A stretch of 64,000 nucleotides of DNA, taken from Anthoceros angustus. Lineage: Eukaryota > Plantae > Anthocerotophyta. The notes beneath the pieces are model-generated. The model saw only the letters and a list, made by a program, of their open reading frames with translations. It did not search any database and had not been told where the DNA came from. The stretch spans positions 496,001 through 560,000 of the forward strand of contig MU008179.1 of NCBI GenBank assembly GCA_010909165.1, given 5' to 3'. Below, in pieces: positions 999 to 55,306 of this stretch. Position 1 is the first letter of the stretch. Every line of letters starts with the position of its first letter. A program made the position numbers and the translations under genes.

Positions 999-1254
999 TG
1001 ATGAGAATCAATAGCTCTTAGATAGAAGAGAAACAATGGAATGAATTGATTAATGAGTAAAGTACAAGCCTTTAAATAGGCTGGGTGGTTGGTGGTTACA
1101 ACAATATGTTGTTGTAACCATAAGTAGTTGCAACCATAAGTTGTTGCAACTATAAGTTGTTGTAACAACTAACTACCTAAAGCCCTAGCTCTAAATTAAT
1201 GTTTAAGTAATGAGGCCCTAATGAATAGTGCCCTAAGCTAGACCTATTTCATCA
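999..1254 (-). repeat. Copia-A 3' LTR
   Basis: TG..CA termini; adjacent PPT (gtgagtgggag on minus strand, 1255-1265). Confidence 0.93.
1094..1167. promoter_or_regulatory. 4 x 16-bp tandem repeat plus palindrome in Copia-A LTR U3
   Basis: ataagt(t/a)gttg(c/t)aac(c/t/a)-type unit x4 at 1104-1167; inverted repeat ggttacaacaa..ttgttgtaacc at 1094-1119; minus-strand TATTTAAA at 1071-1078; present in all three LTRs. Confidence 0.7.
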
Positions 1255-1559
1255 CTCCCACTCACTATGAATGTAGGGGTGAATTCTAGCTTCAAAATGA
1301 GGTCTAAATCATAGATAGACTCCCACTTAATCAAAAGTTATAAGCCTAAGAAAAAGTCAAACTTAAGCTTATTGATGAATAATAAGCCTGAAATAGAAAA
1401 CTTAATATGTCCACCAAAATATTCACCAGAATAAGGTTGACAAATAATAGCTCGAAATAGGCTTAAAAGAGAGGCCTAAAATAAATAAATAAATCAGGCG
1501 CGGGCCTGAAAATAAAAGGCTTTAAATGGATAAGCCCGATATGGGCTTATCCTAAATCA

Positions 1560-1860
1560 GCCCCGGCCACGCCGATGGCAGTGGCGTACGGCCGTTAAGG
1601 CCTTCCGCACCGGCCGCGGCACGGGGGTGTCGGGAGGATAGCCGTCATTGTCGGCTCTCCTCCTCCCCCCGGGCATCGCGCTCCGCGCACATCGAGCTTC
1701 TCGGCTGCTCGCGCCCATCGCGCTGGCGCCCGCCGCCGCGCTCGCGCGCGCTCGCCCGCGCTCCGCGCCGCTGCGCCGCGCTCAGCGCCCGCTGTTGTGG
1801 GCACTTGGCGCGCTCCCCGGGGGCAGCGTGGTCTTGTGGTCGCTCCCTCACATAAAAATG
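1560..1860 (+). promoter_or_regulatory. GC/CpG-rich island and cataaaaa box, putative promoter of the Copia-A antisense gene (copy 1)
   Basis: Sharp GC-rich (cgcgct-type) block in AT-rich surroundings, ~100 bp upstream of ATG 1959; repeated at ~9420-9682. Confidence 0.5.
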
Positions 1861-1958
1861 CGGATGGATTTGCGCTCCTTGATGTGAACCTGATGTTGCT
1901 CCGCCTCTGTTAATGCATGATTGTTCGTTGTTGCGATTGAGTATTGTTGCATTATAAT

Positions 1959-3031
1959 ATGGCCGCGCCTCATAACGGTGAGATTCCATGTCCATTTGCC
2001 ATTGCACATTTTCCTCATATTTTCCATTGTTCAATTGCATTTTCATATCTCTTGCATGTTTGAATACGACTAATATACCTAATGTGGTGGCAGGTCCTCG
2101 TGTGGAGGAAGCCGTGCCCCCATGCTCCAAAGGACGAGGCCATGAAGAAAATGAAAGAGCAAACCGCATAGCAAGAAGAAGAAGGAAACTTGCCGCGCGT
2201 GGAGAAAGGGAAAAATTGAGCCGGGAAGCCGCCCGTGGGCGCATCTTGTGGTATAGAGAAGCACTTGCACGGGGTGAAGAGATCCCAATATCGGGCCCCG
2301 GCCGTAACATAGGAAAGGACATGGAAGATCCTAATTTCTCTTATGAATTCCTGCAAGCATGTGCCGAGGTGGCGAAAATAGGTGGAGAAATGGCCGATGG
2401 AGAGGATGACGTCTTGGTGGTACAAGCACTCGCCGGAAATGCCGAGGTCGTCATCAAAGAGGTCGAGGGGACTGGTAAGCCAATAATGTGCAAAATAAAT
2501 TGCAATAAATAATTTGATTGCATAAAAATACTAATGATTGTTGATGTAGATAATCCAACTACCGAGGGCTCGAGCTGTATCCTGAGTGTCCCGGTATGAC
2601 TTCAACATAGAAGAAGAGTCGGAGGAGCCTGGGACTCCATAAACAGACGGAGGCCCCAGTGTGAGGGCAGCCCAATGGAGAGCATATGCTAGCGCCGACA
2701 TAGGAGAAGTAGGGGCTAGGAAAGAAAAGTGAGTAGGTGTAAAACCTATAGTTAGGGGCTAGTAACTAGTGTAACCTATGCTAATAATAAGCTAATCTAC
2801 ATCTATTTTGCGGATGTGGAGAAAGGGTAGGCACAAGCCATGTGAGGTTTGCCCTACCTCTACAACCTATAACAAAACAAAAGGAAAATACCAAACTCCT
2901 ATTTGCCACTGAAACCTATGCGAGCAACATACATGGTGCTTCCGGAGGAAAGGACGACCACGAAGTCCCCATGGAATATGTATGTGAGAAAAAGGGATAA
3001 AAATGATGTGGTTAGGTGCATATCCATGTGA
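1959..3031 (+). CDS. Spliced antisense accessory gene of Copia-A, copy 1 (exons 1959-1977, 2094-2474, 2550-2728, 2814-3031)
   Basis: Donors GTGAGA, GTAAGC and GTGAGT; ctaat branch motifs; acceptors ggcag, tgtag and ttttgc(a/g)g; phase-1 joins are in frame; exons 3-4 have indels in this copy. Confidence 0.75.
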
Positions 3032-3246
3032 AGAGTACGAAGGACACACCAAGCACTTGTATAGTAAGTGACCTAACTTCGAATGACTAACTCAACACCA
3101 TTTTTCTTCCTGTAACCCATGGAGTGTTTTGTAGGGTCCTTTTGGGCATTAGAGAGAGAAGAGAAGTGCGGATGATTACTTGGAAATAGAAGAGGAAATA
3201 AACATGCTAGATAAACTTTGTGGATTGTAAAATTGGAAAATACCCA

Positions 3247-6200
3247 CTAGCTAGGCTTAACCTCTTGTACTCCTAACATTTTCATGTGTTTTAAATGCAA
3301 ATCTCTTCCTAATGACTTGGTTAAAAGGTCAGCTGGTTGTTTTGAGTTGGTATATAATTGATATCTATTGTTTTATTTTCTAACATTTCCGTATGTAATG
3401 ATACTCACTATATGTTTAGTTCGAGTGGAAAGCAGGGTTCCTAAAACATAGCAGCCATCCGTAGAGAGGTGTAGGTCCATCTTGGGGATAATTCAACTCT
3501 CAATGCTAACCTACTCCGGACTATATCCTTGGAGACGAGGTGAGGACCCTATACTCGACTGTCGACAAAGCAATGGTTGGTTGTTTCTTACTTGACCATG
3601 AAATGGGTGCACCTCCTAGCGATGCATAGCCGGATCTGATTTGCGGCTATCGGGATCTCCAAGATAGTCGGCATCGGATAAGTTGTAACTTAGATATGCC
3701 GGAACATGTTTATACATCAATCCTGTGTGCATAGTCCCTTTTAAATACCTGAATATTCTCTTGACACATTGCCAATGTTGTCGTCCGATTCTCAAAAATT
3801 GTGAGATCGCACTAACTTCAAAAGATATATCGGGTCTTGTGAAGTTACTTAAATATATTAAGGTGCCAACAGATGTCGTATGGTACCTGACATTCTCTTT
3901 CTCTGCATCTTTAGGGCTCATATCTCGTAAGCCTTGTGCCACTTGGAAATGGTGTGGCTGGCTTAGCATCTTCTAGTCCAAACTTCTTTAAGCTTTCTTT
4001 TATATATTTTGTTTGAACCAAGGAAATGGATTTATTACCTCTATTTCTTATAATGTTAACGCCAAGGGCATAACTAAGGTCTCCAGTGTCATTTCATAAT
4101 GACTTCTCAACCATGCTTTAATTTCAGCTAGATGGGAGAGTGAAGATGAAGCTAAAAATAAGTCATCCACATATAGTAAGAGGTAAATTGTGTCGTTTAG
4201 TCTTCGGATATACATGCTAGCATCCGCTTTGCTTTGAACAAAACCATATTTTGTAAGCTTGTCATGTATATCATTATTCCATTCCTTGCTGATTGCTTAA
4301 GGCCATAAATGCCTTTAATGAGCTGCATACATGGTCTTCTTTACCTTTGACTTCATAGCCTTGAGTTGTCTCATGTATATTTCTTCTTGGATTCGCCATG
4401 CAGATAGGCGCTTTGACGTCCATCATGTGAAGATGTAAGTCATGTTGAGCGGACAAGGCTATTATAATTCGAGGAGGCAAACTTTGCTACGGTGCATAGG
4501 TAGCCTGTGGTATGTAATCTAAACCCGGTATCTGGTAAACCCTCGCTACCACCTTGCCTTATATCGCTCAATAGAACCATCACCCTTACGTTTGATTTTA
4601 AAGACCCATTTACTTCCCACTATTTTTCTCCCTTTGGGTGGTTTAACTAATTCCCATGTGGAGTTTTCTACTAAAGAGTTGTACTCAATCTCGCTACCTT
4701 CCATGTGTCTTTCTCGGAGAGGAAAATGCTTGTTTCAAGGTTAGCGGTTCCTCTGGATCAACTGTGGCTTTGTAAACAGCTTGATAATAAGGTGTGAGAG
4801 GAGAAATGGGGTCATCGAGTGACAAGATATCCCAAAGGTGGTTCCTTCCATCCAGCAGTCCTGCAATGGTCTAGTCCTAAGATTGTACCTTGGTGCAGTT
4901 GTTGAATGTGTTCTTCAATGTCGACCACTTGTTGAGCCGGTTCCTGCGTGTGAGCTCTTGTTCGCTCGTCGTCGAATTCATCCACTTGCTCGTCGACGGG
5001 CTCATCCTCAAAGGAATACGATCCTCCTCACGAATTTCAACATCATAGTCGATTTCATCATCGGTTAAATGTTGAGGTTCTTCTAAATCGGATCCGGAGT
5101 AGTTGGTCGTCTTGGAATATATTCTAACTCCTCCTCCTCCTCCGCAATGAGGTTCATCCATAGGAGCTTGCTGCGGAGGAATGAATGATGACAAAATCAT
5201 CGTCATCAAAAGTGGAAGGCTCGGATGCGCAGAGGAAGGAGCATCGGGAGTAATGGGAGCAGATGCCCCATAATAGGAGAAAGAATATGAGATTCATGAA
5301 AGGTCACGCTCCTAGCATAAATGAGCTTTCGGGTAGATGGGTCAAATAACTTGTAACCCTTAATGCCTTCTGTAGCCAATAAAGGTATATTTGGCTGCCT
5401 TGGGATCCACTTCTTGCGTTGTACTTTGGGGATGAACACATAAGCGGGGGATCCAAGATTCGTAAATGATCAATGAAGGTTTTCTCCCGAAAAGCTTCAT
5501 ATGGAGTCATGCCTTGGGAGAAGGCGGTCTATTAAGGAGATATGTTGTCAATATAGCTTCAATAACTTTTAGATAATGTAGCTTGGGTGAGCAAACACTG
5601 TGATCTCCTGAGGCGTAAATTTTGTTTTACTCGCCATTTCTTTGAGGTGTGTGTACCACACTAAGTTGTTGCGCTATACCTTGTGCAAATTCAGCAAATT
5701 CATTGAAGTGAACTCTCCTCCATTATCGGAGCGAAGAGTTTTAAGCTTCCTGTCGGTAAGTCTCTCGCCCACATCATATATTCTTTGAAGAAAGAAAAGG
5801 CGACTCTTATGGCGGAGGATGTAGGTGAGGACGAACCGGAATAATCATCGATGAAGGTTAAAAATATCTACAACCACTAAATGAAGGTGCGGATATCGGA
5901 CCACAAATGTCTGTGAACCAACTCTAAGGGTGCCTTAGCCCTCCGAGGGATGGATTGTGGAATGGAGCTTGATGACGTTTGGTTATGACGCAAGCTTCAC
6001 ACCGAGAGGTTCAAGTTTAGGAATACAGGAGTTCTATACAGTTTCCTTAGACATTTGGATAAGCTTTTGGCTATTCGGATGACCTAATCGACTGCCAAAG
6101 CATGGTGCTTGAAGAGTGGAATGGGAGGCTACATTGATGAGGTGTAACGGACCCACTTGGGTGAGAGTTTATAGAGTCCATCTTCTAGTGTGCCGAGGCA

Positions 6201-7394
6201 GTTGTGATACTTATTAGTATGATAGTAAAGGAGACACAAATCGGCTTCAAGGATAATTTGCATGTTATGTTCTTGACATAAACTAGCGGTGACACTAGAT
6301 TCTTGCACATGGAGGGTACATAAAGGACATGGGAGAGAGTAAGAACCCTGGTGGAGCACTTTAATGCCACGGAACCTACACCAAAATATGGTGAGGTTAT
6401 GGTCGCCTAGGAGCTTGTTGTCCTTTTGATGGCGAATCGACTCAAAAAGTTAAGATCGTGACATATATGAGATGTTGCACCTGTCTAAATACCAATTTTG
6501 GTTTGATGGCTTGGAACTTGCCAAGCAGCGGTAAGTCTTGGATTTTCAGGGCTTCTTCTTAACGGCAACATGTGCTCGTGGTGACCTCCTTCTTTGGCTC
6601 ACCATTTTTCTTCTTCCAACAATCCTTCTCCATATGGTTGGTCATCTTGCACCAATTGCGGTAACTCCAGCCTTCTTCATGCCTTTGAAGGTTTAAATGA
6701 AGAAGTGGATGTTCCTTGAAAATTTTGAGTAGGAGTCGGTCTAGGAGTGACCGCCTCGGCCACGTCCTCTTCCTCCCGCGTCATTACACTACTGGCGGGC
6801 TGATCGGGATTTTCATTTTACGGCTTGCGTCCTCCTCAATAAGTGCTCCTATTAATTCACTTACGATATCCGGTTGTGGAGCCCGTTAATTTCTTGTTTT
6901 GTGCAGCTCTAAGGACCGCATTTTGCGTTGTCACAAAGGGCCTATAGGAGGCGGCCCAAGAGGCGGAGGAGGAGCGAGGAGAGCAATAAAAGTTTGTTTC
7001 TCTGTAAGTTTTCTTGAGGATGCATTGAAATTATTCTTTGCAATACGGAAGTTGCTCAAGTGTTGTTGTAAGGAATCGCCTCCTTCATCCTTATAGTATA
7101 TAAGTGACGTGTGGCGATCAATAAGCTCATTCCATCTTTGGAGGCATAAAGTGAGCTAACTTCTCCCACATCTCTGCGGTGTTTGCGTGCAACTTGGAGT
7201 ACCATCGCCGTAAGTCCGTTCATTAAAACGTCTCGGGCTCTCCGATCTTTGGCTTCCCATTCATCTATAGCATCGAGTCCCAAGTGGAACATTCTTCCGC
7301 TTGACAATATTCCATAAGTCGCGGCAGACACCTTGGGCACGGTGTTGCCATACGCACTTGCCGTTGAATCTATCTTTGTCTTTAAAGTTGTCAC
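3247..7394 (-). CDS. Copia-A gag-pol, copy 1 (many frameshifts, probably partly consensus errors)
   Basis: Zinc knuckle CKMTNHMEKDC; integrase ELV(H)TDICGP and LRSDNGGEF; RT YVDD and TRPDISF; RNase H TKHI..EYHYIR. Confidence 0.85.
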
Positions 7395-8051
7395 CTTGAA
7401 TCACTTGAGGCTTGGATTCATTACGCTTTAGCTTTCTCCTTTTCTTCCCTTTAAATTGCTCCCATTCATCTCGCCATATAGATTGTTGTTCTTCAAGCCA
7501 TTTGGTCTTTTGGGCAAAATTTTGCTCTGGCTACCAAGTCATCAATATCCACGTCGAGATCGTCCGACCCCACCATTGCAAGTAATTTTAATGATGCAGG
7601 TTATGCCGTGGTTGACACGCCGTCTTCTTGCATTGTTTTGCGGGAAAGAGGCGGCGGCACAACATTCTTCAAATTATGAATTTCGCATCATAATCGAATC
7701 TGCAGACTTACAATCAAGTGAGAAGAGACCTTGTGAAAGGTCTCGGTCAACAAGTCTATCGAGATAATATTGATTTGTTGTGTATTGTAAGTCAATTTCT
7801 CATTGATAGCGAGTGATTTATTCTAAGTTCGCTCTAATGGAATCAAGAGATTGCTGCGGATGATCCGGATTAGAGCGAAGATACTAGCCTTATTTTTATG
7901 TACTTAGAGATGGCGGACTCTATAGCACTATATTGATAAAGGCTAAATGTAGAAAGGAGAGCTTTACGAGCATAAATGATATCTTGTACTCTATCTCGAC
8001 TTAGACAAAGGGCTTCAATGAGACAACATACTTGTGCCTCTAAAACATCAA

Positions 8052-8560
8052 TCGAGGAGGAAAGCGTCGGGAGGCGAGAGGTCCGGACGGTCCTTCAAAA
8101 TGTCTGTAGGCGTCTGTGAGGCCCACGACGAGCCGAGGACCTCTCTGCAAGCGGGAGGCGGAAGCCTTGAGGAGGAGGAGGAGGGTCGTGGCGGTGCGCC
8201 GCGACTGGCCGTGGCTCGGCCTAGACCGGCCTGGCCGGCGAGGCTCGAGGTGAAGGCGGCGGAGGCGGAGGCGCGCAAAGGTCGGCCGGGATCTACCGAC
8301 GTGATCGAACCGTGGAGAGAAGCGGCGGGCGGCTAACTAAAGGCGAGCAGTGGCGTGGAACAAGCGGGCGAGCTGGAAGAGATGGAGGCCAGCACCGGAA
8401 ATAGGGGACCGTGCGGTGCAGGGAAGTGGAGGAGGCGGAGGAGGCGGAGGGCAACAAGGACACCTAGAGGCGCAACTCAAAGATGCGTCGGAGCAACATG
8501 GGATTCTCAATGGGAGAATCCAAGACTTGACGGATTGAGCGCCTCAACCGCTGACGGAGG
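8052..8560 (+). other. Internal fragment of element C embedded in the Copia-A 5' UTR
   Basis: Matches ~53857-54415; absent from the other Copia-A UTRs (15923, 17864); bounded by gaggag microhomologies. Confidence 0.65.
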
Positions 8561-8862
8561 AGAATTGAGGTCAAACTCCTCCCGAATGTAAGAAGATTTG
8601 ATTTGATGTTGTTCTTCTTCTTTGAAGCCTTGATCTTCCTCCTAAATTCTTGTCCTTGGATTAAAGGAATCCATGGAGGCGGACAAGAATTGATGCACAA
8701 TGTGTGCATCATTGTGCGCTGGTCACCGATGATTCTAAAGGCGAAATCTCCACGCATTATCTTCATTTGAAGTACTACAAACGCAAAAGCATTGGAGAGT
8801 AAATTGCCTAGAGCATAAGGAAGCGAGGTGCTCAAGCACAAAGAGCTATATGCTCGATACCA

Positions 8863-9116
8863 TGATGAGAATCAATAGCTCTTAGATAGAAGAGAAACAA
8901 TGGAATGAATTGATTAATGAGTAAAGTACAAGCCTTTAAATAGGTCGTGGTTGGTGGTTACAACAATATGTTGTTGTAACCATAAGTAGTTGCAACCATA
9001 AGTTGTTGCAACTATAAGTTGTTGTAACAACTAACTACCTAAAGCCCTAGCTCTAAATTAATGTTTAAGTAATGAGGCCCTAATGAATAGTGCCCTAAGC
9101 TAGACCTATTTCATCA
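8863..9116 (-). repeat. Copia-A middle (shared) LTR
   Basis: PBS tggtatcgagc (tRNA-iMet-like) on the left at 8852-8862; PPT on the right at 9117-9127. Confidence 0.93.
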
Positions 9117-9788
9117 CTCCCACTCACTATGAATGTAGGGGTGAATTCTAGCTTCAAAATGAGGTCTAAATCATAGATAGACTCCCACTTAATCAAAAGT
9201 TATAAGCCTAAGAAAATGCTAACAACTTAAGCTTGATGAATAATAAGCCTGAAATAGAAAACTTAATATGTCCACCAAAATATTCACCAGAATAAGGTTG
9301 ACAAATAATAGCTCCGAAAATAGGCTTAAAAGAGGCCTAAAATAAATAAATAAATCGGTAGCACGAAAATAAAAGGCCTTAAAAGGCTTTAAATGGATAA
9401 GCCAATACGGCTTATCCTATCAACCGACGCCACGCCAGTGGCGCAGTAGTGCAAGTTCCGCGCATGACGCGGGGTGTCGGGAGGATAGCCGTCATTGTCG
9501 GCTCTCCTCCTCCCCGCATCGCGCTCCGCGCCGCGCTCGCGCCATCGCGCTCCGCGCCGCGCTCCGCGCCGCGCTCGCGCCGCGCTCGCCCGCCGCCGCC
9601 GCGCTCGCGCAACTGTTGTGGGCGCGTAATTGGCGCGCTCGGGGGCCAGCGTGGCTCTTGTGGTCGCTCCTCGCATAAAAATGCGGATGGATTTGCGCTC
9701 CTTGATGTGAACCTGATGTTGCTCCAGCCCTCCTATTAATGCATGATTGTTCTTGTATGTGACTGTTGAGTATTATTGCAGTTATAAT

Positions 9789-10860
9789 ATGGCCTCATAG
9801 GTGAGATTCCATGTCCATTTGCCATTGCACATTTTCCTCATATTTTCCATTGTTCAATTGCATTTTCATATCTCTTGCATGTTTGAATAACTAATATACC
9901 TAATGTGGTGGCAGGTCCTCGTCGTCGGAGGAAAGCTGCCCCCATGCTCCAAAGGACGAGGCCATGAAGAAAATGAAAGAGCAAACCGCATAGCAAGAAG
10001 AAGAAGGAAACTTGCGCGTGGAGAAAGGAAAAATTGAGCGGAAGCCGCCGTGCATCTTGTGGTATAGAGAAGCACTTGCAGGTGAAGAGATCCCATGTCG
10101 GGCCCGGCCGTAATATAGGAAAGGACATGGAAGATCCTAATTTCTCTTATGAATTCACGCAAGCATGTGCCGAGGTGGCGGCAGTGGAGAAATGGCCGAT
10201 GGAGGATGACGTCTTGGTGGTACAAGCACTGGAAATGCCGATGTGGTCATCAAAGAAGTCGAGGGGGCTGGTAAGCCAATAAAATGCAAAATAAATTGCA
10301 ATAAATAATTTGATTGCATAAAAATAATACTAATGATTGTTGATGTAGATAATCCAACTACCGAGGGCTCTGGAGCTGTGTCCTCGGAGTGTCCTGGGTA
10401 TGACGACTTCAACATAGAAGAAGAGTCGGAGGAGTCGGGGGACTCCATAAAACAGGACGGAGGCCCCCAGCAGGCTGTATGTGAGGGCAGCCCAAGCTGG
10501 AGAGCATATGCTAGCGCCGACATAGGAGAAGTAGGGGCTAGGGAAAAGAAAAGTGAGTAGGTGTAAAAACCTATAGTTAGGGGCTAGTAACTAGCTGTAA
10601 CCTATGCTAATGATAAACTTATCTACATCTATTTTGCAGATGGGGAGAAAGGGGTAGGCACAAGCCATGTGAGGTTTGCCCTACCTCTACAACCTATAAC
10701 AAAAACAAAAAGGAAAATACCAAACTCCTATTTGCCACTGAAACCTATGCGAGCAACATACATGGTGCTTCCGGAGGAAAGGACGACCACGAAGTCCCCA
10801 TGGAATATGTATGTGAGAAAAAGGGATAAAAATGATGTGGTTAGGTGCATATCCATGTGA
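9789..10860 (+). CDS. Spliced antisense accessory gene of Copia-A, copy 2 (exons 9789-9800, 9915-10270, 10349-10552, 10640-10860)
   Basis: Same splice signals as copy 1; exons 3 and 4 open and joined in frame; exons 1-2 have indels in this copy. Confidence 0.75.
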
Positions 10861-11076
10861 AGAGTACGAAGGACACACCAAGCACTTGTATAGTAAGTGA
10901 CCTAACTTCTGAATGACTAACTCAACACCATTTTTCTTCCTATAACCCATGGAGTGTTTTGTAGGGTCCTTTTGGGCATTAGAGAGAGAAGAGAAGGAAT
11001 GATGATTACTTGGAAATAGAAGAGGAAATAAACATGCTAGATAAACTTTGTGGATTGTAAAATTGGAAAATACCCA

Positions 11077-14000
11077 CTAGCTAGCTGGCTTAACCTCTTG
11101 TACTCCTAACATTTTCATGTGTTTTAAATGCAAATCTCTTCCTAATGACTTGGTTAAAAGGTCAGCTGGATTGTTTTGAGTTGGAATATAATTGATATCT
11201 ATTGTTTTATTTTCTAACATTTCCCGTATGTAATGATACTCGACTGCTATATGTTTAGTTCTGGAGTGGAAAACAGGGTTCCTAGCTAAGGCAATAGCCC
11301 CCTGACTGTCACTGTAGAGAGGTGTAGGTCCATCTTGGGGATAATTCAACTCACTCAATGCTAACCTACTCCAGACTATATCCTTGGAGACGGAGGTGAG
11401 GACCCTATACTCGACTGTCGACAAAGCAATGGTTGGTTGTTTCTTACTTGACCATGAAATGGGTGCACCTCCTAGCGATGCATAGCCGGATCTGATTTGC
11501 GGCTATCGGGATCTCCAAGATAGTCGGCATCGATAAAATTAATTGTAACTTAGATATGCCGGGAACATGTTTGTACATCAATCCTGTGTGCATAGTCCCT
11601 TTTAAATACCTGAATATCCTCTTGACACATTGCCAATGTTGTCGTCCAGGATTCTCCAAAAATTGTGAGATCGCACTAACTTCAAAAGATATATCGGGTC
11701 TTGTGAAGTTACTTAAATATATTAAGGTGCCAACAGATGTCGTATGGTACCGACATTCTGCTTTCTCTGCATCTGTTTTAGGGCTCATATCTCTGTAAGC
11801 CTTGTGCCACTTGGAAATGGTGTGGTGGCTTAGCATCTTCTAGTCCAAACTTCTTTAAGCTTTCTTTTATATATTTTGTTTGAACCAAGGAAATGGATTT
11901 ATTACCTCTATTTCTTATAATGTTAACGCCAAGGGCATAACTAAGGTCTCCAGTGCTCATTTCATAATGACTTCTCAACCATGCTTTAATTTCAGCTAGA
12001 TGGGAGAGTGAAGATGAAGCTAAAAATAAGTCATCCACATATAGTAAGAGGTAAATTGTGTCTTGTTTAGTCTTCGGATATACATGCTAGCATCCGCTTT
12101 GCTTTGAACAAAACCATATTTTGTAAGCTTGTCATGTATATCATTATTCCATTCCTTGCTGATTGCTTAAGGCCATAAATGCCTTTAATGAGCCGCATAC
12201 ATGGTCTTCTTTACCTTTGACTTCATAGCCTTGAGTTGTCTCATGTATATTTCTTCTTGGATTCGGCCATGCAGATAGGCGCTTTGACGTCCATCATGTG
12301 AAGATGTAAGTCATGTTGAGCGGACAAGGCTATTATAATTCGAGGAGGCAAACTTTGCTCTGTGCATAGGTAGCCGGTATGTAATCTAAACCCGGTATCT
12401 GGTAAACCCTCGCTACCATTGCCTTATATCGCTCAATAGAACCATCACCCTTACGTTTGATTTTAAAGACCCATTTACTTCCCACTATTTTTCTCCCTTT
12501 GGGTGGTTTAACTAATTCCCATGTGGAGTTTTCTACTAAAGAGTTGTACTCAATCTCGCTACCTTCCATGTGTCTTTCTCGGAGAGGAAAATGCTTGTTT
12601 CAAGGTTAGCGGTTCCTCTGGATCAACGTGGCTTTGTAAACAGCTTGATAATAAGGTGTGAGAGGAGAAATGGGGTCATCAGAAGTGACAAGATATCCCA
12701 AAGGTGGTTCCTTCCATCCAGCAGGTCCTGCAACAGCGGGTCTAGTCCTAAGATTGTACCTTGGTGCAGGTTGTTGAATGTGTTCCTCAATGTCGACCAC
12801 TTGTTGAGCTGGTTCCTGTGCAGGTAACGCAGGCTCTTGTTCTGGCTCGTCGTCGAATTCATCCACTTGCTCGTCGACGGGCTCATCCTCGAAAGGAATA
12901 CGATCCTCCTCACGAATTTCAACATCATAGTCGATTTCATCATCGCTTAAATGTTGAGGTTCTTCTAAATCGGGATCCGGAGTAGTTGGTCGTCTTGGAA
13001 TATATTCTAACTCCTCCTCCTCCTCCGCAATGAGGTTCATCCATAGGAGCTTGCGGAGGGAGTGAATGAATGATGACAAAATCATCGTCATCAAAAGTGG
13101 AAGGCTCGGATGCGCAGAGGAAGGAGCATCGGGAGTAATGGGAGCAGATGCCCCATAATAGGAGAAAGAATATGAGATTCATGAAAGGTCACGCTCCTAG
13201 CATAAATGAGCTTTCGGGTAGATGGGTCAAATAACTTGTAACCCTTAATGCCTTCTGTAGCCAATAAAGGTATATTTGGCTGCCTTGGGATCCAGACTTC
13301 TTGCGTTGTACTTTGGGGATGAACACATAAGCGGGGATCCAAGATTCGTAAATGATCAATGAAGGTTTTCTCCCAAAAGCTTCATATGGAGTCATGCCTT
13401 GACATGGAAGTCGGTCTATTAAGGAGATATGTTCTGTCAATATAGCTTCAATAACTTTTAGATAATGTAGCTTGGGTGAGCAAACACTGTGATCTCCTGA
13501 GGCGTAAATTTTGTTTTACCTTTCATTTTGAGGTGTGTGTACCACACTAAGTTGTTGCGCTATACCTTGCAAATTCAGCAAATTCATTGAAGTGAACTCT
13601 CCTCCATTATCGGAGCGAAGAGTTTTAAGCTTCTGTCGGTAAGTCTCTCGCCCACATCATATATTCTTTGAAGAAAGAAAAGGCGACTCTTATGGCGGAG
13701 GATGTAGGTGAGGACGAACCGAATAATCATCGATGAAGGTTAAAAATATCTACAACCACTAAATGAAGGTGCGGATATCGGACCACAAATGTCTGTGAAC
13801 CAACTCTAAGGGTGCCTTAGCCCTCCGAGGGATGGATTGTGGAATGGAGCTTGATGACGTTTGGTTATGACGCAAGCTTCACACCGGAGAGGTTCAAGTT
13901 TAGGAATACAGGAGTTCTATACAGTTTCCTTAGACATTTGGATAAGCTTTTGGCTATTCGGATGACCTAACGTGCCAAAGCATGGTGCTTGAAGAGTGGA

Positions 14001-15270
14001 ATGGGAGGCTACATTGATGAGGTGTAACGGACCCACTTGGGTGAGTTTATAGAGTCCATCTTCTAGTGTGCAGGCAGTTGTGTGATACTTATTAGTATGA
14101 TAGTAAAGGAGACACAAATCGGCTTCAAGGATAATTTGCATGTTATGTTCTTGACATAAACTAGCGGTGACACTAGATTCTTGCACATGGAGGGTACATA
14201 AAGGACATGGGAGAGTAAGAACCTGGGTGGAGCACTTTAATGCCACGGAACCTACACCAAATATGGTGAGGTTATGGTCGCCTAGAGCACCTTGTTGTCC
14301 TTTTGATGGCGAATCGACTCAAAAAGTTAAGATCGTGACATATATGAGATGTTGCACCTGTCTAAATACCAATTTTGGTTTGATGGCTTGGAACTTGCCA
14401 AGCGATAAGTGATGGAGTTGCCGTGGAGGGCTTCTTCTTAACGGCAACATGTGCTCGTGGTGACCTCCTTCTTTGGCTCACCATTTTTCTTCTTCCAACA
14501 ATCCTTCTCCATATGGTTGGTCATCTTGCACCAATTGCGGTAACTCCAGCCTTCTTCATGCCTTTGAAGGTTTAAATGAAGAAGTGGATGGTCCTTGAAA
14601 ATTTTGAGTAGGAGTCGGTCTAGGGGCGTTTGCGCCTCGGCCACGTCCTCTTCCTCTGCCGCGTACTGTACATTACTTGGCGGGCTGATCGGGATTTTCA
14701 TTTTACGGCTTGCGTCCTCCTCAATAAGTGCTCCTATTAATTCACTTACGATATCCGGTTGTGGAGCCCGTTAATTTCTTGTTTTTGTGCAGCTCTAAGG
14801 ACCGCATTTTGCGTTGTCACAAAGGGCCTATAGGAGGCGGCAAGTGGCGAGAGCAATAAAAGTTTGTTTCTCTGTAAGTTTTCTTGAGGAGGATGCATTG
14901 AAATTATTCTTTGCAATACGGAAGTTGCTCAAGTGTTGTTGTAAGGAATCGCCTCCTTCATCCTTATAGTATATAAGTGACGTGTGGCGATCAATAAGCT
15001 CATTCCATCTTTGGAGGCATAAGTCGAGCTAACTTCTCCCACATCTCTGCGGTGTTTGCGTGCAACTTGGAGTACCATCGCTTGGTAAGTCCGTTCATTA
15101 AAACGTCTCGGGCTCTCCGATCTTTGGCTTCCCATTCATCTATAGCATCGAGTCCCAAGTGGAACATTCTTCCGTCGTTGACAATATTCCATAAGTCGCG
15201 CAGACACCTTGGGCACGGTGTTGCCATACGTACTTGCCGTTGAATCTATCTTTGTCTTTAAAGTTGTCAC
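11077..15270 (-). CDS. Copia-A gag-pol, copy 2
   Basis: RNase H ORF 11077-11424 (YSDSQGAIALARNPVFHSRTKHI); RT (WELVKPPKGRKIVGSKWVFKIK); integrase; gag. Confidence 0.88.
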
Positions 15271-18115
15271 CTTGAATCACTTGAGGCTTGGATTCATTAC
15301 GCTTTTAGCTTTCTCCTTTTCTTCCTTTTAAATTGCTCCCATTCATCTCGCCATATAGATTGTTGTTCTTCAAGCCATTTGGTCTTTTGGGCAAAATTTT
15401 GCTCTGCTCAGTCATCAATATCCACGTCGAGATCGTCCGACCCCACCATTGCAAGTAATTTTAATGATGCGGGTTATGCGTGGTTGACACGCCGTCTTCT
15501 TGCATTGTTTTGCGGAAAGAGGCGGCGGCACAACATTCTTCAAATTATGAATTTCGCATCATAATCGAATCTGCAGACTTACAATCAAGTGAGAAGAGAC
15601 CTTGTGAAAGGTCTCGGTCAACAAGTCTATCGAGATAATATTGATTTGTTGTGTATTGTAAGTCAATTTCTCATTGATAGCGAGTGATTTATTCTAAGTT
15701 CGCTCTAATGGAATCAAGAGATTGCTGCAGATGATCCGGATTAGGAGCGAAGATACTAGCCTTATTTTTATGTACTTAGAGATGGCGGACTCTATAGCAC
15801 TATATTGATAAAGGCTAAATGTAGAAAGGAGAGCTTCTGAGCATAAATGATATCTTGTACTCTATCTCGACTTAGACAAAGGGCTTCAATGAGACAACAT
15901 ACTTGTGCCTCTAAAACATCAATCGAGGAGAATTGAGGTCAAACTCCTCCGAATGTAAGAAGATTTGATTTGATGTTGTTTCTTCTTCTTTGAAGCCTTG
16001 ATCTTCCTCCTAAATTCTTGTCCTTGGATTAAAGGAATCCATGGAGAGCGATAAGAAATTGATGCACAATGTGTGCATCATTGTGCGCTGGTCACCGGAT
16101 GATTCTTTGCTAAAGGCGAAATCTCCACGCATTATCTTCATTTGAAGTACTACAAACGCAAAAGCATTGGAGAGTAAGAACCTGCCGTGGAGCACTTTAA
16201 TGCCACGGAACCTACACCAAATATGGTGAGGTTATGGTCGTCGCCTAGAGCACCTTTTTGTTGTCCTTTTGATGGCGAATCGACTCAAAAAGTTAAGTCG
16301 TGACATATATGAGATGTTGCACCTGTCTAAATACCAATTTTGGTTTGATGGCTTGGAACTTGCCAAGCAGATGAAATCTTGATGGAGTTGTGGAGGGCTT
16401 CTTCTTAACGGCAACATCCTGGTGACCTCCTTCTTTGGCTCACCATTTTTCTTCTTCCAACAATCCTTCTCCATATGGTTGGTCATCTTGCACCAATTGC
16501 GGTAACTCCAGCCTTCTTCATGCCTTTGAAGGTTTAAATGAAGAAGTGGATGTTCCTTGAAAATTTTGAGTAGGAGTCGGTCTAGGAGTGAAGTTTCCGC
16601 CTCGGCCACGTCCTCTCCTCTGCGTCTGTACATTACTTTTGTGATCGGGATTTTCATTTCGGCGCGTCCTCCTCAATAAGTGCTATTAATTCACTTACGA
16701 TATCGTTGTGGAGCCCGTTAATTTCTTCTTTTTTGTGCAGCTCTAAGGACCGCATTTTGCGTTGTCACAAAGGGCCTATAGGAGGCGGCAAGTGAGGAGA
16801 GCAATAAAAGTTTGTTTCTCTGTAAGTTTTCTTGAGAGGATGCATTGAAATTATTCTTTGTCTGGAAGTTGCTCAAGTGTTGTTGTAAGGAATCGCCTCC
16901 TTCATCCTTATAGTATATAAGTGACGTGTGGCGATCAATAAGCTCATTCCATCTTTGGAGGCATAAAGGCTAACTTCTCCCACATCTCTGCGGTGTTTGC
17001 GTGCAACTTGGAGTACCATCGCTTGGTAAGTCCGTTCATTAAAACGTCTCGGGCTCTCCGATCTTTGGCTTCCCATTCATCTATAGCATCGAGTCCCAAG
17101 TGGAACATTCTTCCGTCGTTGACAATATTCCATAAGTCGGCACTTGAGACACCTTGGGCACGGTGTTGCCATCGTCTTTTAATCGAATCTATCTTTGTCT
17201 TTAAAGTTGTCACCTTGAATCACTTGAGGCTTGGATTCATTACGCTTTTAGCTTTCTCCTTTTCTTCCTTTTAAATTGCTCCCATTCATCTCGCCATATA
17301 GATTGTTGTTCTTCAAGCCATTTGGTCTTTTGGCGGCCAAAATTTTGCTCTGCTACCAAGTCATCAATATCCACGTCGAGATCGTCCGACCCCACCATTG
17401 CAAGTAATTTTAATGATGCAGGTTATGCCGTGGTTGACACGCCGTCTTCTTGCATTGTTTTGCGGGAAAGAGGCGGCAGTAACATTCTTCAAATTATGAA
17501 TTTCGCATCATAATCGAATCTGACTTACAATCAAGTGAGAAGAGACCTTGTGAAAGGTCTCGGTCAAGTCTATCGAGATAATATTGATTTGTTGTATTGT
17601 AAGTCAATTTCTCATTGATAGCGAGTGATTTATTCTAAGTTCGCTCTAATGGAATCAAGAGATTGCTGCAGATGATCCGGATTAGGAGCGAAGATACTAG
17701 CCTTATTTTTATGTACTTAGAGATGGCGGACTCTATAGCACTATATTGATAAAGGCTAAATGTAGAAAGGAGAGCTTCTGAGCATAAATGATATCTTGTA
17801 CTCTATCTCGACTTAGACAAAGGGCTTCAATGAGACAACATACTTGTGCCTCTAAAACATCAATCGAGGAGAATTGAGGTCAAACTCCTCCGAATGTAAG
17901 AAGATTTGATTTGATGTTGTTTCTTCTTCTTTGAAGCCTTGATCTTCCTCCTAAATTCTTGTCTGCTTGGATTAAAGGAATCCATGGAGGCGAGAATTGA
18001 TGCACAATGTGTGCATCATTGTGCGCTGGTCACCGGATGATTCTTTGCTAAAGGCGAAATCTCCACGCATTATCTTCATTTGAAGTACTACAAACGCAAA
18101 AGCATTGGAGTAAAT
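14210..18115 (-). repeat. ~1.96 kb direct duplication of the Copia-A 5' UTR-gag-protease region
   Basis: 14210-16168 is repeated from 16169; the junction lies on the 9-bp microhomology GGAGAGTAA. Confidence 0.8.
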
Positions 18116-18173
18116 TGCCTAGAGCATAAGGAAGCGAGGTGCTCAAGCACAAAGAGCTAAATGCTCGATACCA

Positions 18174-18426
18174 TGATGAGAATCAATAGCTCTTAGATAG
18201 AAGAGAAACAATGGAATGAATTGATTAATGAGTAAAGTACAAGCCTTTAAATAGGGTGGTTGGGTGGTTACAACAATATGTTGTTGTAACCATAAGTAGT
18301 TGCAACCATAAGTTGTTGCAACTATAAATTGTTGTAACAACTAACTACCTAAAGCCCTAGCTCTAAATTAATGTTTAAGTAATGAGGCCCTAATGAATAG
18401 TGCCCTAAGCTAGACCTATTTCATCA
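18174..18426 (-). repeat. Copia-A 5' LTR
   Basis: PBS adjacent at ~18163-18173; TSD TACTC follows. Confidence 0.93.
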
Positions 18427-18431
18427 TACTC

Positions 18432-21400
18432 TTAGCAGTATATTTGGCTACCTCCAAGAATGACACATGCAGTTGGTACATTGATAGTGGAGCTTCAGCT
18501 CACATTTGTCATACAAGATCCTTCTTTTCATCTTACCCCTTATGAACCAGGCGGATTCGGGTGATAATAGTGGCCTTCAAGTACAAGGAAGAGGCATTGT
18601 CGTTGTCCTGTGAGGGAGGCGAGAATTTTGAAGTTAGAGGATGTTTACTATGTCCCACAAATGTCAAAGAACTTAGTTCCAGAGACTTACAATATCAAAT
18701 GAGTACAACGTTCATTTTGCTGGAGACACCTGCATGATCCAGGACACAGTTAGTCCTCCTAGTGTGTCATGTCTCTGCATTTGTCGACCTTTCAATGACC
18801 TATACAGGATAGATTTTTCCCCAATGCCTGTTACCAACATTGCCAATTTAACTCAGCCTAAGCAATCTGTGCTATGGCACCATAGGCTGGCACATGTTAA
18901 CTCACGTAAGTTAGTAACTCTCAAAGCAACTGCTCGGGATCCTATCTCGCTTGTCTCCTTTTGTGCGAATCATGTGTGTATGCCAAGAGTCGATGGTGAC
19001 GACAACTTAATGTCAAGCGAAAGGCGTGCATATGGTGGAGGGAGTTTGTAGGTGCCTTTGCACATCATGCAACTCCTAAGGCATAATCATGCAGAAGTGT
19101 TCCATATTCTCAAGCCCAAACGGTGTGGCCGGCTCATCAATGGCTTGTTGAAGCCGAGCCATGCTGAACATTTTTGGACTCTCACAAATATTGGGCTATT
19201 TCAACGCGACCTACATCAAGAACCGACTTCCAACTTCAACATCGTGTCACTCCTTATGAGGGTGGTCGTAAACCCAATCAATTGCATCTTCATTATCTTG
19301 GGCATATGCACATATTCCCAAACAACTTCGTCAAGCTTGACGACAAGGCCAGCAAGATGCTGTTTGTGGGATATCTTCAAGGAATCAAGGGATATAATGG
19401 TGAACCCGAGACTCGGGTCACGCATTCAAGGAGTGTGATTATTGAGCAATTTCGCGGACAGCGAGAGGGAGAGAAATGGACCATCCCCCGTCGAACCAGC
19501 GATCCGAAGGTTGCAATTCCTTTGGATTCGACCTTGCGAGATGTGAGTGGGAGCGATGATGACCAGCTGTTTGAGTGGGAGTCCACGGATCATGGAGCGC
19601 GCACACACCGCACAAGGGCCGGTGCCCATTCAGTACCCACTCCACATGCACCTCCTTAGATCCCTGGACCTCACACCGGCGGCCCTATACAACGCACTGC
19701 AGCGCTCACCCTCACATCCGCGGCGGCATGATCCTCATGATCCGCCAGCGGGAATGAAGCCTCCTTAGCGCTGCAGCCCCGTGCGCGTCGCTCCACAAGG
19801 CGTGCGGACCCCGCAGCATGAATCCTACCACCTTGAAGGTGCATACGGACAGGGAGGGACGCCTCCTCGCATGCTCAACCCGGCGCACATCCGATCACGC
19901 GCCCTCCTCCTCATACGTAACCACGTGCCCCAAGCCACATCCTTGGAGCCCGTTTGGCTCTGTTTGCACCATCTGTTTCACGCACCCATTTCAAATAATA
20001 ATTCATTAGTTGGGCCTTTACCAAATTTAGAAAATGAACCTAGTTTAGATGTCAATATTTTAACCGGACATGCCTCTTTAGTCCAAGCTTACATAGCACC
20101 ACGGATCCTATTGAACACACTACCGTGAAGAGGCTTTGTCTGGGACAAGGAGAAGTGGAGGCAGCTATTCAATCCGAGTATAATAGTTTAATAGAAAATA
20201 ATACTTGGGAATTAGTTAAGCTTCCTTATGGTAGAAAGCCTATCTGATAGTGGGTGTTTTGCATTAAATTGAAAGCAGATGGTAGTGTAGAACGCTACAA
20301 GGCATGTTTGTGTGCTAAGGGGTATAGCTAAGTTCCGGGTGTTGATTATCATGAAACTTTTTCGCCTGTAGTTAAGTTGCAGACTATCAGATACTTGTTA
20401 GCCTTAGCAGTTGAGTTAGATTTAGACTCACAACAAATGGATGTTACAATTGCTTTTCTATATGGTAAATTAGAGGAGCTGATTTACATGGAACAACTCA
20501 AGTGTTTATAGATCCTAAAACAAAGGACTTAGTTTGTAGACTCTTAAGGTGTATTTATGGACTCAAGCAATCTCCTTTGAAGTGGTATGCTGATATTGAT
20601 GGTACCCTTATCGAGATTGGCTTTGTTCGTTGTAATTTTGATGAGAATGTATATTTCCTATGCAAAGATGGAAAGCTGGTTATTATTGCTTTATATGTGG
20701 ATGACATCATAATTTACTACGAATAGCCGGAGTTATTATCAAAAGTGAAGACCACTCTTAGTTCCAAGTACCGGATGAAGGATATTGGGACTCTTACCTA
20801 TTGTCTTGGAGTTCAAATTGCTAGAATAGGAAGGTACACTTAGTATGTATCAAACCAAATATGTTAAAGAGCTTCTTAATCGTTTCAAGCTTGAGGCGCT
20901 CATCCTGCAGCCACTCCACTTGCATTTGGACAAGTCTTATCTACTCGAGCCCACCCACGGAGGAGGAGAGAGGATGCTTCACACACTTTATAGGGGGCGA
21001 GGATGCTTACTCTTCCGAGTGGTTGGACTCGACGATATCACTCATGTTGTTTCTATTGTATCGCAATTCTTTTCTAATCCGGTTTAGCTCATTGGGTTGC
21101 GGTAAAACGCATCTATCGTTATGTATCCGGGACCATGTAGGACTTCAATATAAGCGATCGAGCAGGAAGGCTTGAGGGTTGGTCGATGCTAATTGGGCAG
21201 CTGATCCGTTGACAAGGAAAAGCCTATCTAGCTATTGTTTTACCTTATGTGGTGCTGTAGTTTCATGGACATGTAAGAAGCAGTGTGTCTCTTAGCTCAA
21301 CGAGAGTGAAAATGATTCCTTAACACTTCTGGTAAGGAAGTTGGAAGGTCCTTATTAGCGGAGATGGATCAAGCACAGGACTCACCTACCTTGTTGCATT

Positions 21401-21636
21401 GCGACAATATGTCGGCAATAGCTTTAACCAAGAACGCCAAGTACCATGCTCGGACTAAGCATATAGGCATTTATCATCATTTTATTAGACAGCTAGTCTC
21501 CGAGCATCATGTAACTATTGAATACATCCCAACAGAGGAGAACCGCGGATATATTTACAAAGGTTTATCCAAGGCCAAGCACCAGTATTTCTCTTACGCT
21601 TTAGGCCTTGTGGACTTATCAAATGGTTCTTCTTAA
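18432..21636 (+). pseudogene. Copia-B pol (PR-INT-RT-RH), left copy, with an integrase-core deletion
   Basis: WYIDSGAS; LWHHRLAHVN; YGLKQSP; YVDD; CDNMSAIAL..HARTKHI. Confidence 0.85.
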
Positions 21637-21750
21637 GTGGGAGCTCTTACGCACATCGCTAACTTGCTATACATTTACGTTCTTATCAAGAGTGAACTGG
21701 ACGTGTTAGCTTGTTAGTCTCATTCATGTTGCTTCAAACGTGAGTGGGAG

Positions 21751-21963
21751 TGTAGAGGTTATGGCTATTAGAGCCCTAGTTAGGGCACGTTTGAAGATTA
21801 TACTTTAATTATTACTTAAGTTACAGTGATATATGAATAGGCATCTTAGATTCAGTTTTTATAACTACTTTTATATGCTCTTCAAAAACATTGTCTTGGT
21901 TCACTTTTTTTCAATTCATACACTCTTTGTTCTACGCTTATGTGAAATCCATGTGCCTTCACA
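21751..21963 (+). repeat. Copia-B 3' LTR (left copy)
   Basis: TGTAGAGG...CTTCACA; PPT gtgagtgggag at 21740-21750; TSD AGAGC at 21964-21968. Confidence 0.92.
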
Positions 21964-41201: not shown

Positions 41202-42274
41202 TGTTAGACCTGACTCTCCCTCTTTCAGGCCTGGAGGATCCTCTCTTCTGGTGGGATGGAAGGCCTTAATTTTGCTTCCGTCACCTTGTTGGGTAGCCAA
41301 CAGTATGTATTGTTTATGGAAGTGTCTCCGGGACTCGGGGAGGTGTGCCCGGTCTATCTAGGGCGCACAACCGATTTTGTGAAGGCTTCTCATAGCCTAG
41401 AGTGGCTCTCCCAGGCAAGAAATGAGGCAGGCTTCCGCCCGCCGAGCGCGAGGTAGGTCTGTTGGGGTGCTAGTCAAGCGTGTGTTGCCATAGTAGCTGA
41501 GAATCTCTGTCACCTCACAGCGCCTAACGCCTCCCGGAGAAGGCCGCCGCCCGCGTGAACCCATGCGGGGCCCTATCTCCATCGTGCCCACATTTGTAAC
41601 CAATCCGGCAGCAGGGCACTTGTGGCTGCCAGCATTGTAAGTTATCAAATTTGCAGGTGTTTGATGAAATGGCAGGTGTAAATGCTATCGAGGGCGCTCA
41701 TGAGTCACCTGGCACCACTCTTATGATCTGACCGACAGTTTTTCCACGTGCTACGCCTGCCTCCAAGGTGGTTGGTGTAGCATAGTGCTTCTTAGCTCTT
41801 CATAAAGATGAAGTTGAGCTTTCTGACTCTTCAAAAAGGCGAAGTTGAGCTTTCTGGCTCGGCCTGCCACACAGACAGAGAAAGGCAAAGTTGAGCCGTA
41901 TTTGACCTAGGTACCATATATGTATAGCTCTGTTAATGAATGGGATGTAAATGAATGAATTAAGGAGGCAGAGCCTAAACGTGAGGAGCTTTGAAATTAT
42001 TGGTTCCCCAGGCCTGTTGCATTCCGATTGGAGGATTAGGAAGGGGCAAAAGCGGCAAGCAGGAAGCCCGGGCGCAAGGCGAGCATGGCTGCAGATGAGA
42101 TATTTTGATGCGTGGAAAGCGAGGATCAGATACACGCAAGGAAAGTGCACACTGCGCAGGCTCGTCAGCGAGCGGACTGGTACAAATAGCGGGCGGTTGG
42201 GCACTGCATTCCAACGATTTCATCCATCAATTTCAGCGCTTCCCGGGTCTCCGAGTCGTCGTGCGAATCGAGCC

Positions 42275-42918
42275 ATGGCAGCATCCCAGCTCCTGTTCCT
42301 GGCCGTGGCCATGGCGGCAGCAGCCCTGGTTGCAGGCGACGCGGAAGTGGTGGTGGATTTCTGCGTGACGGACCCGGCGCCCGGCAACTCCATCCGACCC
42401 ACCGGAAGCCCCTGCAAGGCTCTGGCCGACGTCAAGTCCTCCGACTTCAAGTTCACGCTGGTGCCGGGCGCCCCGGGCGGCCGCCTCAACTTCGGCGTCG
42501 CGGTGGGCTTCGCCGACCAGTGGGGCGGGCTCAACGGCCTGCAGGTTGCCATCGCGAGGCTGGATTTCGGAAAGGGCGGCCAGATCCTCCCACCACCACC
42601 CGCGCGCCACCGAGATCTTCTACGTGGTGAAGGGCAAGGTGCTGAACGGCTTCATCGACTCCGCCGGCACCCTGTACGAGGAGGTGTTGAGCGCGGGCCA
42701 GGCCTTCGTCTTCCCCAGAGGCCTCATCCACTACCAGCAGAACGTGGGCAAGGGCCCCGCCTACGGCATCTCCTCCTTCAACAGCCAGAGCCCCGGCCTG
42801 CAGCTCACATTCAACGCCGTCCTCGAATCCAACCCCTCATTTCCTCCAAGGATCTCGCCCAAACTCTCAACGTCAAGAAGAGCGAGGTCGACTCCTGCGC
42901 AAGGCCTTTGGAGCCTAA
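42275..42918 (+). CDS. Germin-like protein, copy 4
   Basis: Same motifs as copy 1. Confidence 0.9.
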
Positions 42919-54700: not shown

Positions 54701-55301
54701 ACTGGCGGCGGAGGCGGGTCGGCGGGCAACACGCCCGGCCAAGCACCTCTAGAGGAGGGAGTCTGGGTGCTCGGGCCCATGTGGAGGAGGCAATTCAACA
54801 AGTCGACTCGACTTTGCCTACTACCACGCAGCTTCTCAAGGCCTTTGGAGGTGCCGCGCCACCCCAGGTGGGCCAGTTCCAGACGTCGGAAGGAGGCGAG
54901 GAGGAAGGCCGGAGATAGCAGCCACGTGGACCTTAGGAGGCCTGTTTGTGACGACAGCAGGGAGCAGTGGAGGAGCGGACGTGGGAAGGACAGTGACCAC
55001 CGCGATTTTCCCCAAGGATCTTGAGTGAAGTGTGAATGGTGAGAGGAGCGGACGGAGGGACGAGACAAACTGAATGACACGGACGAATGAGTCCTTAAAC
55101 GTTTATACCTTGGAACTTTGTCCGGTGAATGTTACTGGTAGTTAGTCGTAAAGCGAGGAATGTGTGTGGGGTTTAAAGCAGGCGCTATGTGAGGTGAAAG
55201 CAGATTGAAGCGTGGCCAGAGCCTATCATTCTCTTGGGAGCGGACCTCCTTACTACAACGACACGGATTGTCGCCCTGGCCGTCGGCAAAGTCGCGCCAC
55301 A
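51735..55301 (+). mobile_element. Element C: 3.57 kb solo-LTR-like insertion containing a long GC-rich ORF
   Basis: Termini (c)gtgacgac...gtcgcgccaca; TSD ACAAC at 51730-51734 and 55302-55306; removing it restores the Copia-B frame TNIVQPKSQVLLAVYLATSKNDTCSWYIDSG. Confidence 0.8.
52070..55024 (+). CDS. Element C ORF (frameshifted, start approximate); coiled-coil protein of unknown function
   Basis: Overlapping plus-strand ORF pieces 52022-52756, 52793-53524, 53149-53946 and 54395-55024; shares the RDFPQG(Y/S)* end with the left copy. Confidence 0.45.
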
Positions 55302-55306
55302 ACAAC

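Follow-up and report, generated by a model that had tools for sequence, protein, structure and literature searches.

In a 64,000-nucleotide stretch of the Anthoceros angustus genome (Anthocerotophyta; contig MU008179.1, the whole stretch being called the window below), we found a putative four-exon gene that lies inside a Ty1/copia retrotransposon and is oriented against the gag and pol genes of that element. The antisense unit occupies positions 1959-3031 on the plus strand, between the polypurine tract (1255-1268) and the pol stop codon (about 3247), and runs tail to tail with pol. This is the aORF-3R location, i.e., a coding unit between pol and the 3' long terminal repeat (LTR) on the strand opposite to gag-pol, and codon periodicity and the openness of the exons support its coding character. 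Judging from the sequence, we hold with about even confidence that the unit is an accessory gene borne by the element, of the class of antisense open reading frames (ORFs) between pol and the 3' LTR, with a small charged and probably nuclear product. By its architecture we file it with the antisense extra ORFs, and not with the TRP28 family.

The retrotransposon, which lies on the minus strand at 999-18426, has two internal halves, copy 1 (999-8059) and copy 2 (8863-15930), and both halves contain the unit. Its parts are as follows.

1560-1860, plus strand: GC island of about 300 bp (74% GC, 50 CpG), with a 10/20-bp tandem repeat at 1719-1793
1851-1857, plus strand: TATA-like CATAAAA of putative role, 108 nt 5' of the ATG and kept in copy 2 at 9674
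1959-1977, plus strand: exon 1 of copy 1 (19 nt: ATG and 16 nt), the weakest part of the model
1978-2093, plus strand: intron 1 of copy 1 (116 nt, 36% GC, 41% T), GTGAGA...CAG, with two CTAAT motifs and no codon periodicity
2094-2474, plus strand: exon 2 of copy 1 (381 nt), open, encoding the Arg-rich helix and the acidic helical second half
2475-2549, plus strand: intron 2 of copy 1 (75 nt, 24% GC), GTAAGC...TACTAAT...TAG, passing the strict intron scan (see below) in both copies
2550-2728, plus strand: exon 3 of copy 1, broken, 25 nt shorter than in copy 2 over 8 gaps and with stops in the model frame
2729-2813, plus strand: intron 3 of copy 1 (85 nt), with the donor GTGAGT intact and the acceptor GG, not AG
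2814-3031, plus strand: exon 4 of copy 1, its frame broken close to the 5' end, and agreeing exactly with copy 2 over the final 47 or so codons and the TGA (3029-3031)
3197-3202, plus strand: single AATAAA, 166 nt 3' of the stop codon and some 50 nt short of the pol stop, present in both copies (copy 2: 11027)
9789-9800, plus strand: exon 1 of copy 2, 7 nt shorter and ending in TAG
9801-9914, plus strand: intron 1 of copy 2 (114 nt), with matching splice sites
9915-10270, plus strand: exon 2 of copy 2, interrupted by 11 short gaps when aligned with copy 1
10271-10348, plus strand: intron 2 of copy 2 (78 nt), with matching splice sites
10349-10552, plus strand: exon 3 of copy 2 (204 nt), whose model frame is open and encodes an acidic piece with an isoelectric point (pI) of 4.1
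10553-10639, plus strand: intron 3 of copy 2 (87 nt, 36% GC), GTGAGT...CTAAT...TTTTGCAG, passing the strict intron scan
10640-10860, plus strand: exon 4 of copy 2 (221 nt with the TGA), whose model frame is likewise open and encodes a basic piece (pI 10.4)

In this model, the spacer between pol and the polypurine tract would hold a complete unit on the opposite strand, which leads from the GC-rich region and the TATA-like site through the short exon 1 to a stop codon and AATAAA, and whose approximately 274 codons would be divided among four exons by three short AT-rich GT..AG introns. The GC island may be the promoter or the 5' region of the unit. An initial annotation of this DNA had given a distance of about 2 kb between the pol stop and the polypurine tract, and our positions for the end of pol (3247-3252) and for the tract agree with it. 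The donors (GTGAGA, GTAAGC and GTGAGT), acceptors (CAG, TAG and CAG) and branch motifs that it quoted were all recovered, and its description of the introns as short, AT-rich and phase 1 was borne out: their lengths in copy 1 and copy 2 are 116/114, 75/78 and 85/87 nt, their GC content is 22-36% as compared with 44-63% in the exons, and CTAAT-type branch motifs lie 13-33 nt 5' of each acceptor. The convergence of the unit on pol, also claimed there, is evident from the tail-to-tail arrangement and the place of the AATAAA. As for the proposal of a four-exon spliced antisense gene as a whole, it is partly supported by the rarity of the splice signals, the coding periodicity and the openness of the exons described below, and is weakened at exon 1 and intron 1 and at the third acceptor of copy 1.

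The strict intron scan accepted GTRAG...YAG segments of 60-140 nt with GC <= 38%, both 60-nt flanks >= 43% GC and CTRAY near the 3' end. When both strands of the window (128 kb) were scanned, five hits were obtained, three of which are intron 2 in both copies and intron 3 in copy 2, and, as a control, strand sequence totalling 696 kb, taken from 80 unrelated contigs that bear Copia elements, gave five hits at four loci. Elsewhere, intron-like sites of such quality occur about once per 100-170 kb. For codon periodicity, the counts were pooled over the exons as base counts without translation. Separately, exons 1 and 2 of copy 1 were translated together as a check of the phase. Periodicity in the model frame was found for exon pieces 2, 3 and 4 (p = 2e-4, 0.011 and 0.065, respectively), inside the range of the gag and pol pieces of the same element (p = 0.38 to 2e-8), and the three introns showed none (p = 0.35-0.61). 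Codon position 1 is G in 49% of codons in exon 2 and exon 3 alike, in the frames that the splice phases predict. The chance of a stop-free single model frame is 0.0022, 0.037 and 0.0098 for exon pieces 2, 3 and 4, respectively. We conclude that an intron-exon structure with coding character is present here, or was once present in the source sequence of the copies.

The same data bear on the explanation by chance, in which a purine-rich spacer is open in several frames and happens to contain GT..AG pairs. The region 2018-2530 is indeed open in three of the six frames because the plus strand is purine-rich with 16% T, and the initial annotation combined the two copies with a free choice of splice sites. 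However, chance would have to place two to three rare intron-like sites on the same strand of a 0.9-kb stretch, where the composition changes and with phases that fit together, and would also have to produce the statistics of periodicity and openness; we consider it very improbable.

Still less probable, and the least so of the explanations weighed here, is an extra gene on the sense strand. The longest ORF of the region (1645-2322, minus strand, 225 aa) follows pol, as in SIRE-type elements. When exon 2 was shuffled with its dinucleotides preserved, however, a minus frame was fully open in 24.5% of the shuffles as compared with 1.2% for a plus frame, and this figure, together with the scarcity of T on the plus strand, makes the minus-strand ORF unremarkable. 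Codon periodicity was not seen in it (p = 0.17), it extends across both the GC tandem repeat and the AT-rich intron 1, and Pfam gave no match to it. Its product is rich in S, L, R and P, as is typical when a coding strand is read in reverse. Being no better than the shuffles, it does not place the element among those with a SIRE-type env-like ORF on the sense strand after pol.

Another possibility is a spliced antisense non-coding RNA, which would pair with the 3' end of the sense RNA or feed small-RNA pathways, with the reading frames being incidental. Given the convergence on pol, base pairing would be possible between a transcript of the unit and the 3' portion of the sense RNA, which covers the whole cassette; antisense regulatory RNAs of retrotransposons are known, for example from Ty1 and micropia (PMC7264820, PMC12786077), and the lack of protein relatives described below would suit this explanation. 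Against it, the periodicity is confined to the exons and stands in the frame predicted by the splice phases, and the joint chance that the three exon pieces would be open is very low. We regard a purely non-coding role as improbable, though less so than chance.

The antisense accessory gene that we favour would be transcribed from a promoter of its own, toward pol. Because its introns are antisense to the genomic RNA, they would not be spliced out of that RNA and would be carried along, being copied at each retrotransposition; retrotransposition reporters with antisense introns use the same principle (PMC12786077). After splicing and translation, the product would have four parts, namely an Arg-rich helix, a helical acidic segment, an acidic linker and a basic tail. 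The piece encoded by exon 2 has 126 aa, of which residues 14-58 are predicted to form one long Arg-rich helix with RRRRK, followed by the acidic helical part. The peptide motifs quoted in the initial annotation are present, and the RRRRK run looks like a nuclear-localisation or nucleic-acid-binding motif. Such a product would most likely act in the nucleus on the RNA, DNA or chromatin of the element itself. The initial annotation further suggested a role as a regulator or anti-silencing factor, which, like the nuclear localisation, would be a conjecture from the Arg-rich helix.

The carrier is a Ty1/copia element in which the domains follow the copia order on the minus strand (gag, integrase SH3, RVT_2 and RNase H; Pfam). 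In copy 2, they were found as Retrotran_gag_2 (15000-15227), SH3_retrovirus, which is the integrase end (13091-13342), and RVT_2 (12333-12569 and 11778-12038), and at the C-terminus an RNase H piece (11077-11424) has matches among proteins annotated as Ty1/Copia RNase HI or Pol polyprotein. Membership of Ty1/copia is indicated both by the domain order, with copia-type gag and RVT_2, and by the TG..CA ends of the LTRs, the 5-bp target duplication, the tRNA-Met primer-binding site and the polypurine tract. Among named pol fragments, one of the fern Adiantum comes nearest (59% identity over 63% of the query). The landmarks of the element are as follows.

994-998 (left) and 18427-18431 (right): target-site duplication TACTC
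999-1254, minus strand: 3' LTR of copy 1 (256 bp, TG..CA; self-BLAST), holding a 16-bp tandem repeat at 1095-1166
1255-1268, minus strand: polypurine tract, purine-rich on that strand and immediately inside the 3' LTR, read from the sequence
3247-3252, minus strand: end of pol with the stop codon region, convergent with the antisense unit
3250-7400, minus strand: gag-pol of copy 1 in Copia order (Pfam), in at least 12 open pieces in each copy
8851-8862, minus strand: primer-binding site TGGTATCGAGCA of the initiator tRNA-Met type, adjoining the middle LTR (8863-9118)

The layout of 999-18426 is LTR-internal-LTR-internal-LTR with a single target duplication, and self-BLAST located the LTRs at 999-1254, 8863-9118 and 18174-18426, the first and the last being 97.7% identical. 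Because copies 1 and 2 share this one duplication, they are halves of one insertion and not independent members of the family. With gag-pol in at least 12 pieces per copy and 13% of it open in neither copy, the element as assembled is not intact.

Some further features of the insertion were noted. The gag/leader part is repeated by a tandem duplication of about 1.96 kb inside the element, with 14206-16172 matching 16165-18110. The leader of copy 1 has an additional GC-rich segment of about 500 bp (8060-8556), which is absent from copy 2 and could have come from recombination, gene conversion or an assembly chimera; within it, 8237-8545 is 84% like 54080-54389 of the flanking repeat. The site into which the element was inserted is itself another repeat (1-999 and 18427-19259), of which an uninterrupted copy of the target lies at 54409-56167. 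On the left flank, this repeat has a GC-rich ORF for a coiled-coil-like protein of 220 aa (26-688), with no Pfam family.

Several points weigh against an accessory gene of the element, and they concern the two copies, the reading frame, the predicted product and the searches for relatives. Firstly, the frame of 274 codons (19 + 381 + 204 + 221 nt) is whole in neither copy: exons 1 and 2 are open only in copy 1 (1959-2474), and exons 3 and 4 only in copy 2 (10349-10860). The protein of about 275 aa in the initial annotation is thus encoded by neither copy and is a composite of the two. Over 7.1 kb, 183 substitutions and 124 gap events separate the copies (0.68 gaps per substitution), and 88 of the gaps are of 1-2 nt. 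The gaps are one-sided by patch: at each of the 11 in 1999-2498 it is copy 2 that lacks the bases, at each of the 25 in 2499-3748 it is copy 1, and within each patch the exon is open in the copy that does not lack bases. From the sequence, the gap ratio and the patchiness look like local consensus errors of the assembly, unlike the ordinary decay of sister copies. Note that, with one target duplication common to both copies, the differences between them are post-insertion changes or assembly noise and are uninformative on selection; a selection test on copies 1 and 2 was rejected for this reason.

Secondly, the model is weakest at its 5' end, with doubts about exon 1, intron 1 and the start codon. 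The stretch from the TATA-like site (1851) to the proposed start (1959) contains four other ATGs, and if translation began instead at the in-frame ATG at 1988, no first intron would be needed. In addition, the purine-rich plus strand makes open frames easier to obtain than in average DNA. Thirdly, the AlphaFold2 model of the exon 2 product, made from a single sequence, is mostly one long helix with low confidence (a pLDDT of 66), and a language-model value for 'recognition' fell within the range of shuffled sequences. As to presence across the family, only one insertion (with two internal copies) lies within the 64-kb window.

The homology searches, which were made by separate exon piece, add to these points and agree with the initial annotation, in which no family had been recognised. 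None of the three exon pieces matched any Pfam family at E <= 0.1, including Transposase_28 (PF04195)/TRP28 and SMC, and the unit accordingly does not fall with the TRP28 proteins of Retand and Grande. A word-based search with the 174-aa ORF (region 37-163, candidate proteins of 96-304 aa) gave no relative, an exhaustive phmmer search with exon 2 among 1.84 billion representative proteins gave 0 hits, nothing related to exon 2 turned up in scans of metagenome and viral contigs, no usable match came from the ESM Atlas, and Rfam gave nothing relevant. At 80 metagenome Copia loci, which are 38-48% identical at the end of pol, no relative of the exons or of the spacer was found, and these loci served solely as the control for the intron scan. 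One sequencing run, the RNA nature of which was guessed, gave zero coverage at 80% likeness, which is no proof of silence.

Two contigs among the metagenome Copia contigs of the European Nucleotide Archive (L053:825-954 and L080:883-1012, minus strand) have one antisense intron-like candidate each, 200-300 bp past the pol stop. They were rejected as comparable cassettes, with no coding structure around them, and are probably chance occurrences at a GC-to-AT boundary.

The explanation that comes nearest to an accessory gene is the capture of a host gene, or of a fragment of one, with its introns, in reverse orientation in the spacer, where it would be a passenger without a role and perhaps private to this insertion or its subfamily. 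A former host gene would account just as well for the real-looking introns and the coding periodicity, the capture of genes by LTR elements is documented, as in Bs1 (PMC7264820), and the single insertion in the window suits a private passenger. On the other hand, no host-type relative appeared among the 1.84 billion representatives, and the unit is complete from its upstream region to AATAAA and fits into the spacer with the polypurine tract and pol untouched. The GC content at third codon positions is 0.47-0.55 in the exons, nearer to that of the pol of the element (0.41-0.48) than to that of the one host-type gene of the window, a cupin gene (0.61-0.68), which leans weakly against a recent capture. 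We consider host capture unlikely, although the most serious of the rival explanations.

Antisense extra ORFs between pol and the 3' LTR have been described in plant Gypsy elements, namely gene23 of Grande, RIRE2, TRP28 of Retand and ORF2 of PvRetro13, the last of which is a Ty3/gypsy element (PMC7264820, PMC11963269, PMC4093653), and all the plant examples in these reports are from Gypsy elements, in line with the statement in the initial annotation that such ORFs are known mainly from that group. Gene23 of Grande has its own promoter and a nuclear product, and the TRP28 domain is found in 97% of the recently active Retand clusters (PMC7264820, PMC11963269). The present unit resembles these ORFs in its position between pol and the 3' LTR, its antisense orientation converging on pol, the long spacer and the presumed promoter of its own, and also in having an orphan or poorly understood protein with hints of a nuclear or nucleic-acid-binding product. 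It differs from them in its carrier, a Ty1/copia element with a 2-kb spacer, whereas the Gypsy systems belong to the Tat/Retand group of Ty3/gypsy in flowering plants and have spacers of 2.9-6.6 kb. Moreover, its frame is split by three short introns, whereas the Gypsy ORFs are described as uninterrupted (>600 bp in Retand, PMC11963269) with no introns mentioned. The searchable literature contained no Copia example and no intron-split example of an antisense extra ORF, an absence that is no proof. Reviews have called for attention to antisense and spliced transcripts (PMC7264820).

With SIRE/Maximus, which has an env-like extra ORF, the element shares the Copia superfamily and the extra coding capacity after pol, but the SIRE ORF has the sense orientation and its product is often a transmembrane protein, whereas the unit supported here is antisense and spliced, and the sense-strand ORF is not significant. 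Among retroviruses, HBZ of human T-cell leukaemia virus 1 (HTLV-1) is translated from a spliced message. The likeness to HBZ and to APH-2 of HTLV-2 lies in a gene that is transcribed from the 3' side against the genome, and both of these proteins are nuclear (PMC11963269). They differ in having no sequence relation to the present unit, promoters in the 3' LTR, animal hosts and a function shown by experiment, as compared with one inferred here. The initial annotation likened the role of the putative product to that of VANC of the VANDAL elements (Mutator-like DNA transposons). The likeness would lie only in the idea of an accessory protein that acts on the chromatin of its own element; VANDAL is a different class of transposon, and no similarity to VANC appeared in any search made.

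The antisense extra genes of plant LTR retrotransposons are recognised but unexplained, and have been described for Gypsy lineages of flowering plants. If the accessory-gene reading is true, the architecture arose or was kept in the Copia superfamily too and exists outside flowering plants, and a retroelement is able to keep introns stably provided that they are antisense to its RNA. We suggest only tentatively that antisense accessory genes which evolve fast and contain introns are a regular feature of the Copia elements of this genome, between pol and the polypurine tract, the one here encoding an Arg-rich nuclear protein that would act on the RNA or chromatin of its own element. On that reading, the unit would correspond in Copia to the antisense ORFs of Gypsy elements and to the retroviral antisense proteins. 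Should many Copia families of the genome carry such cassettes, the genome would be a good system for asking what these genes do.

Other repeats were noted in the rest of the window. A second, different Copia fragment is present on the plus strand in two copies (18535-21960 and 56157-59460), with RVT_2 at 57231-58235 and integrase SH3 at 19174-19659, and abuts the cupin array; no clear spacer between pol and an LTR was seen in it for comparison. The array itself consists of a 6.35-kb unit in four tandem repeats, 98% alike, within 21964-47402, and at least one more at the end of the window (59680-64000). The largest ORF tested of an array unit (41951-43012) had no Pfam match, and at least the repeat copy at the window end has a germin/cupin-like ORF (60707-61537; Cupin_1, E = 6e-10) with a signal-peptide-like N-terminus. 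Between 48327 and 51843, there are tandem segments of about 830 bp, which include a copia-type gag ORF (48900-49517; Retrotran_gag_2, E = 3e-10).

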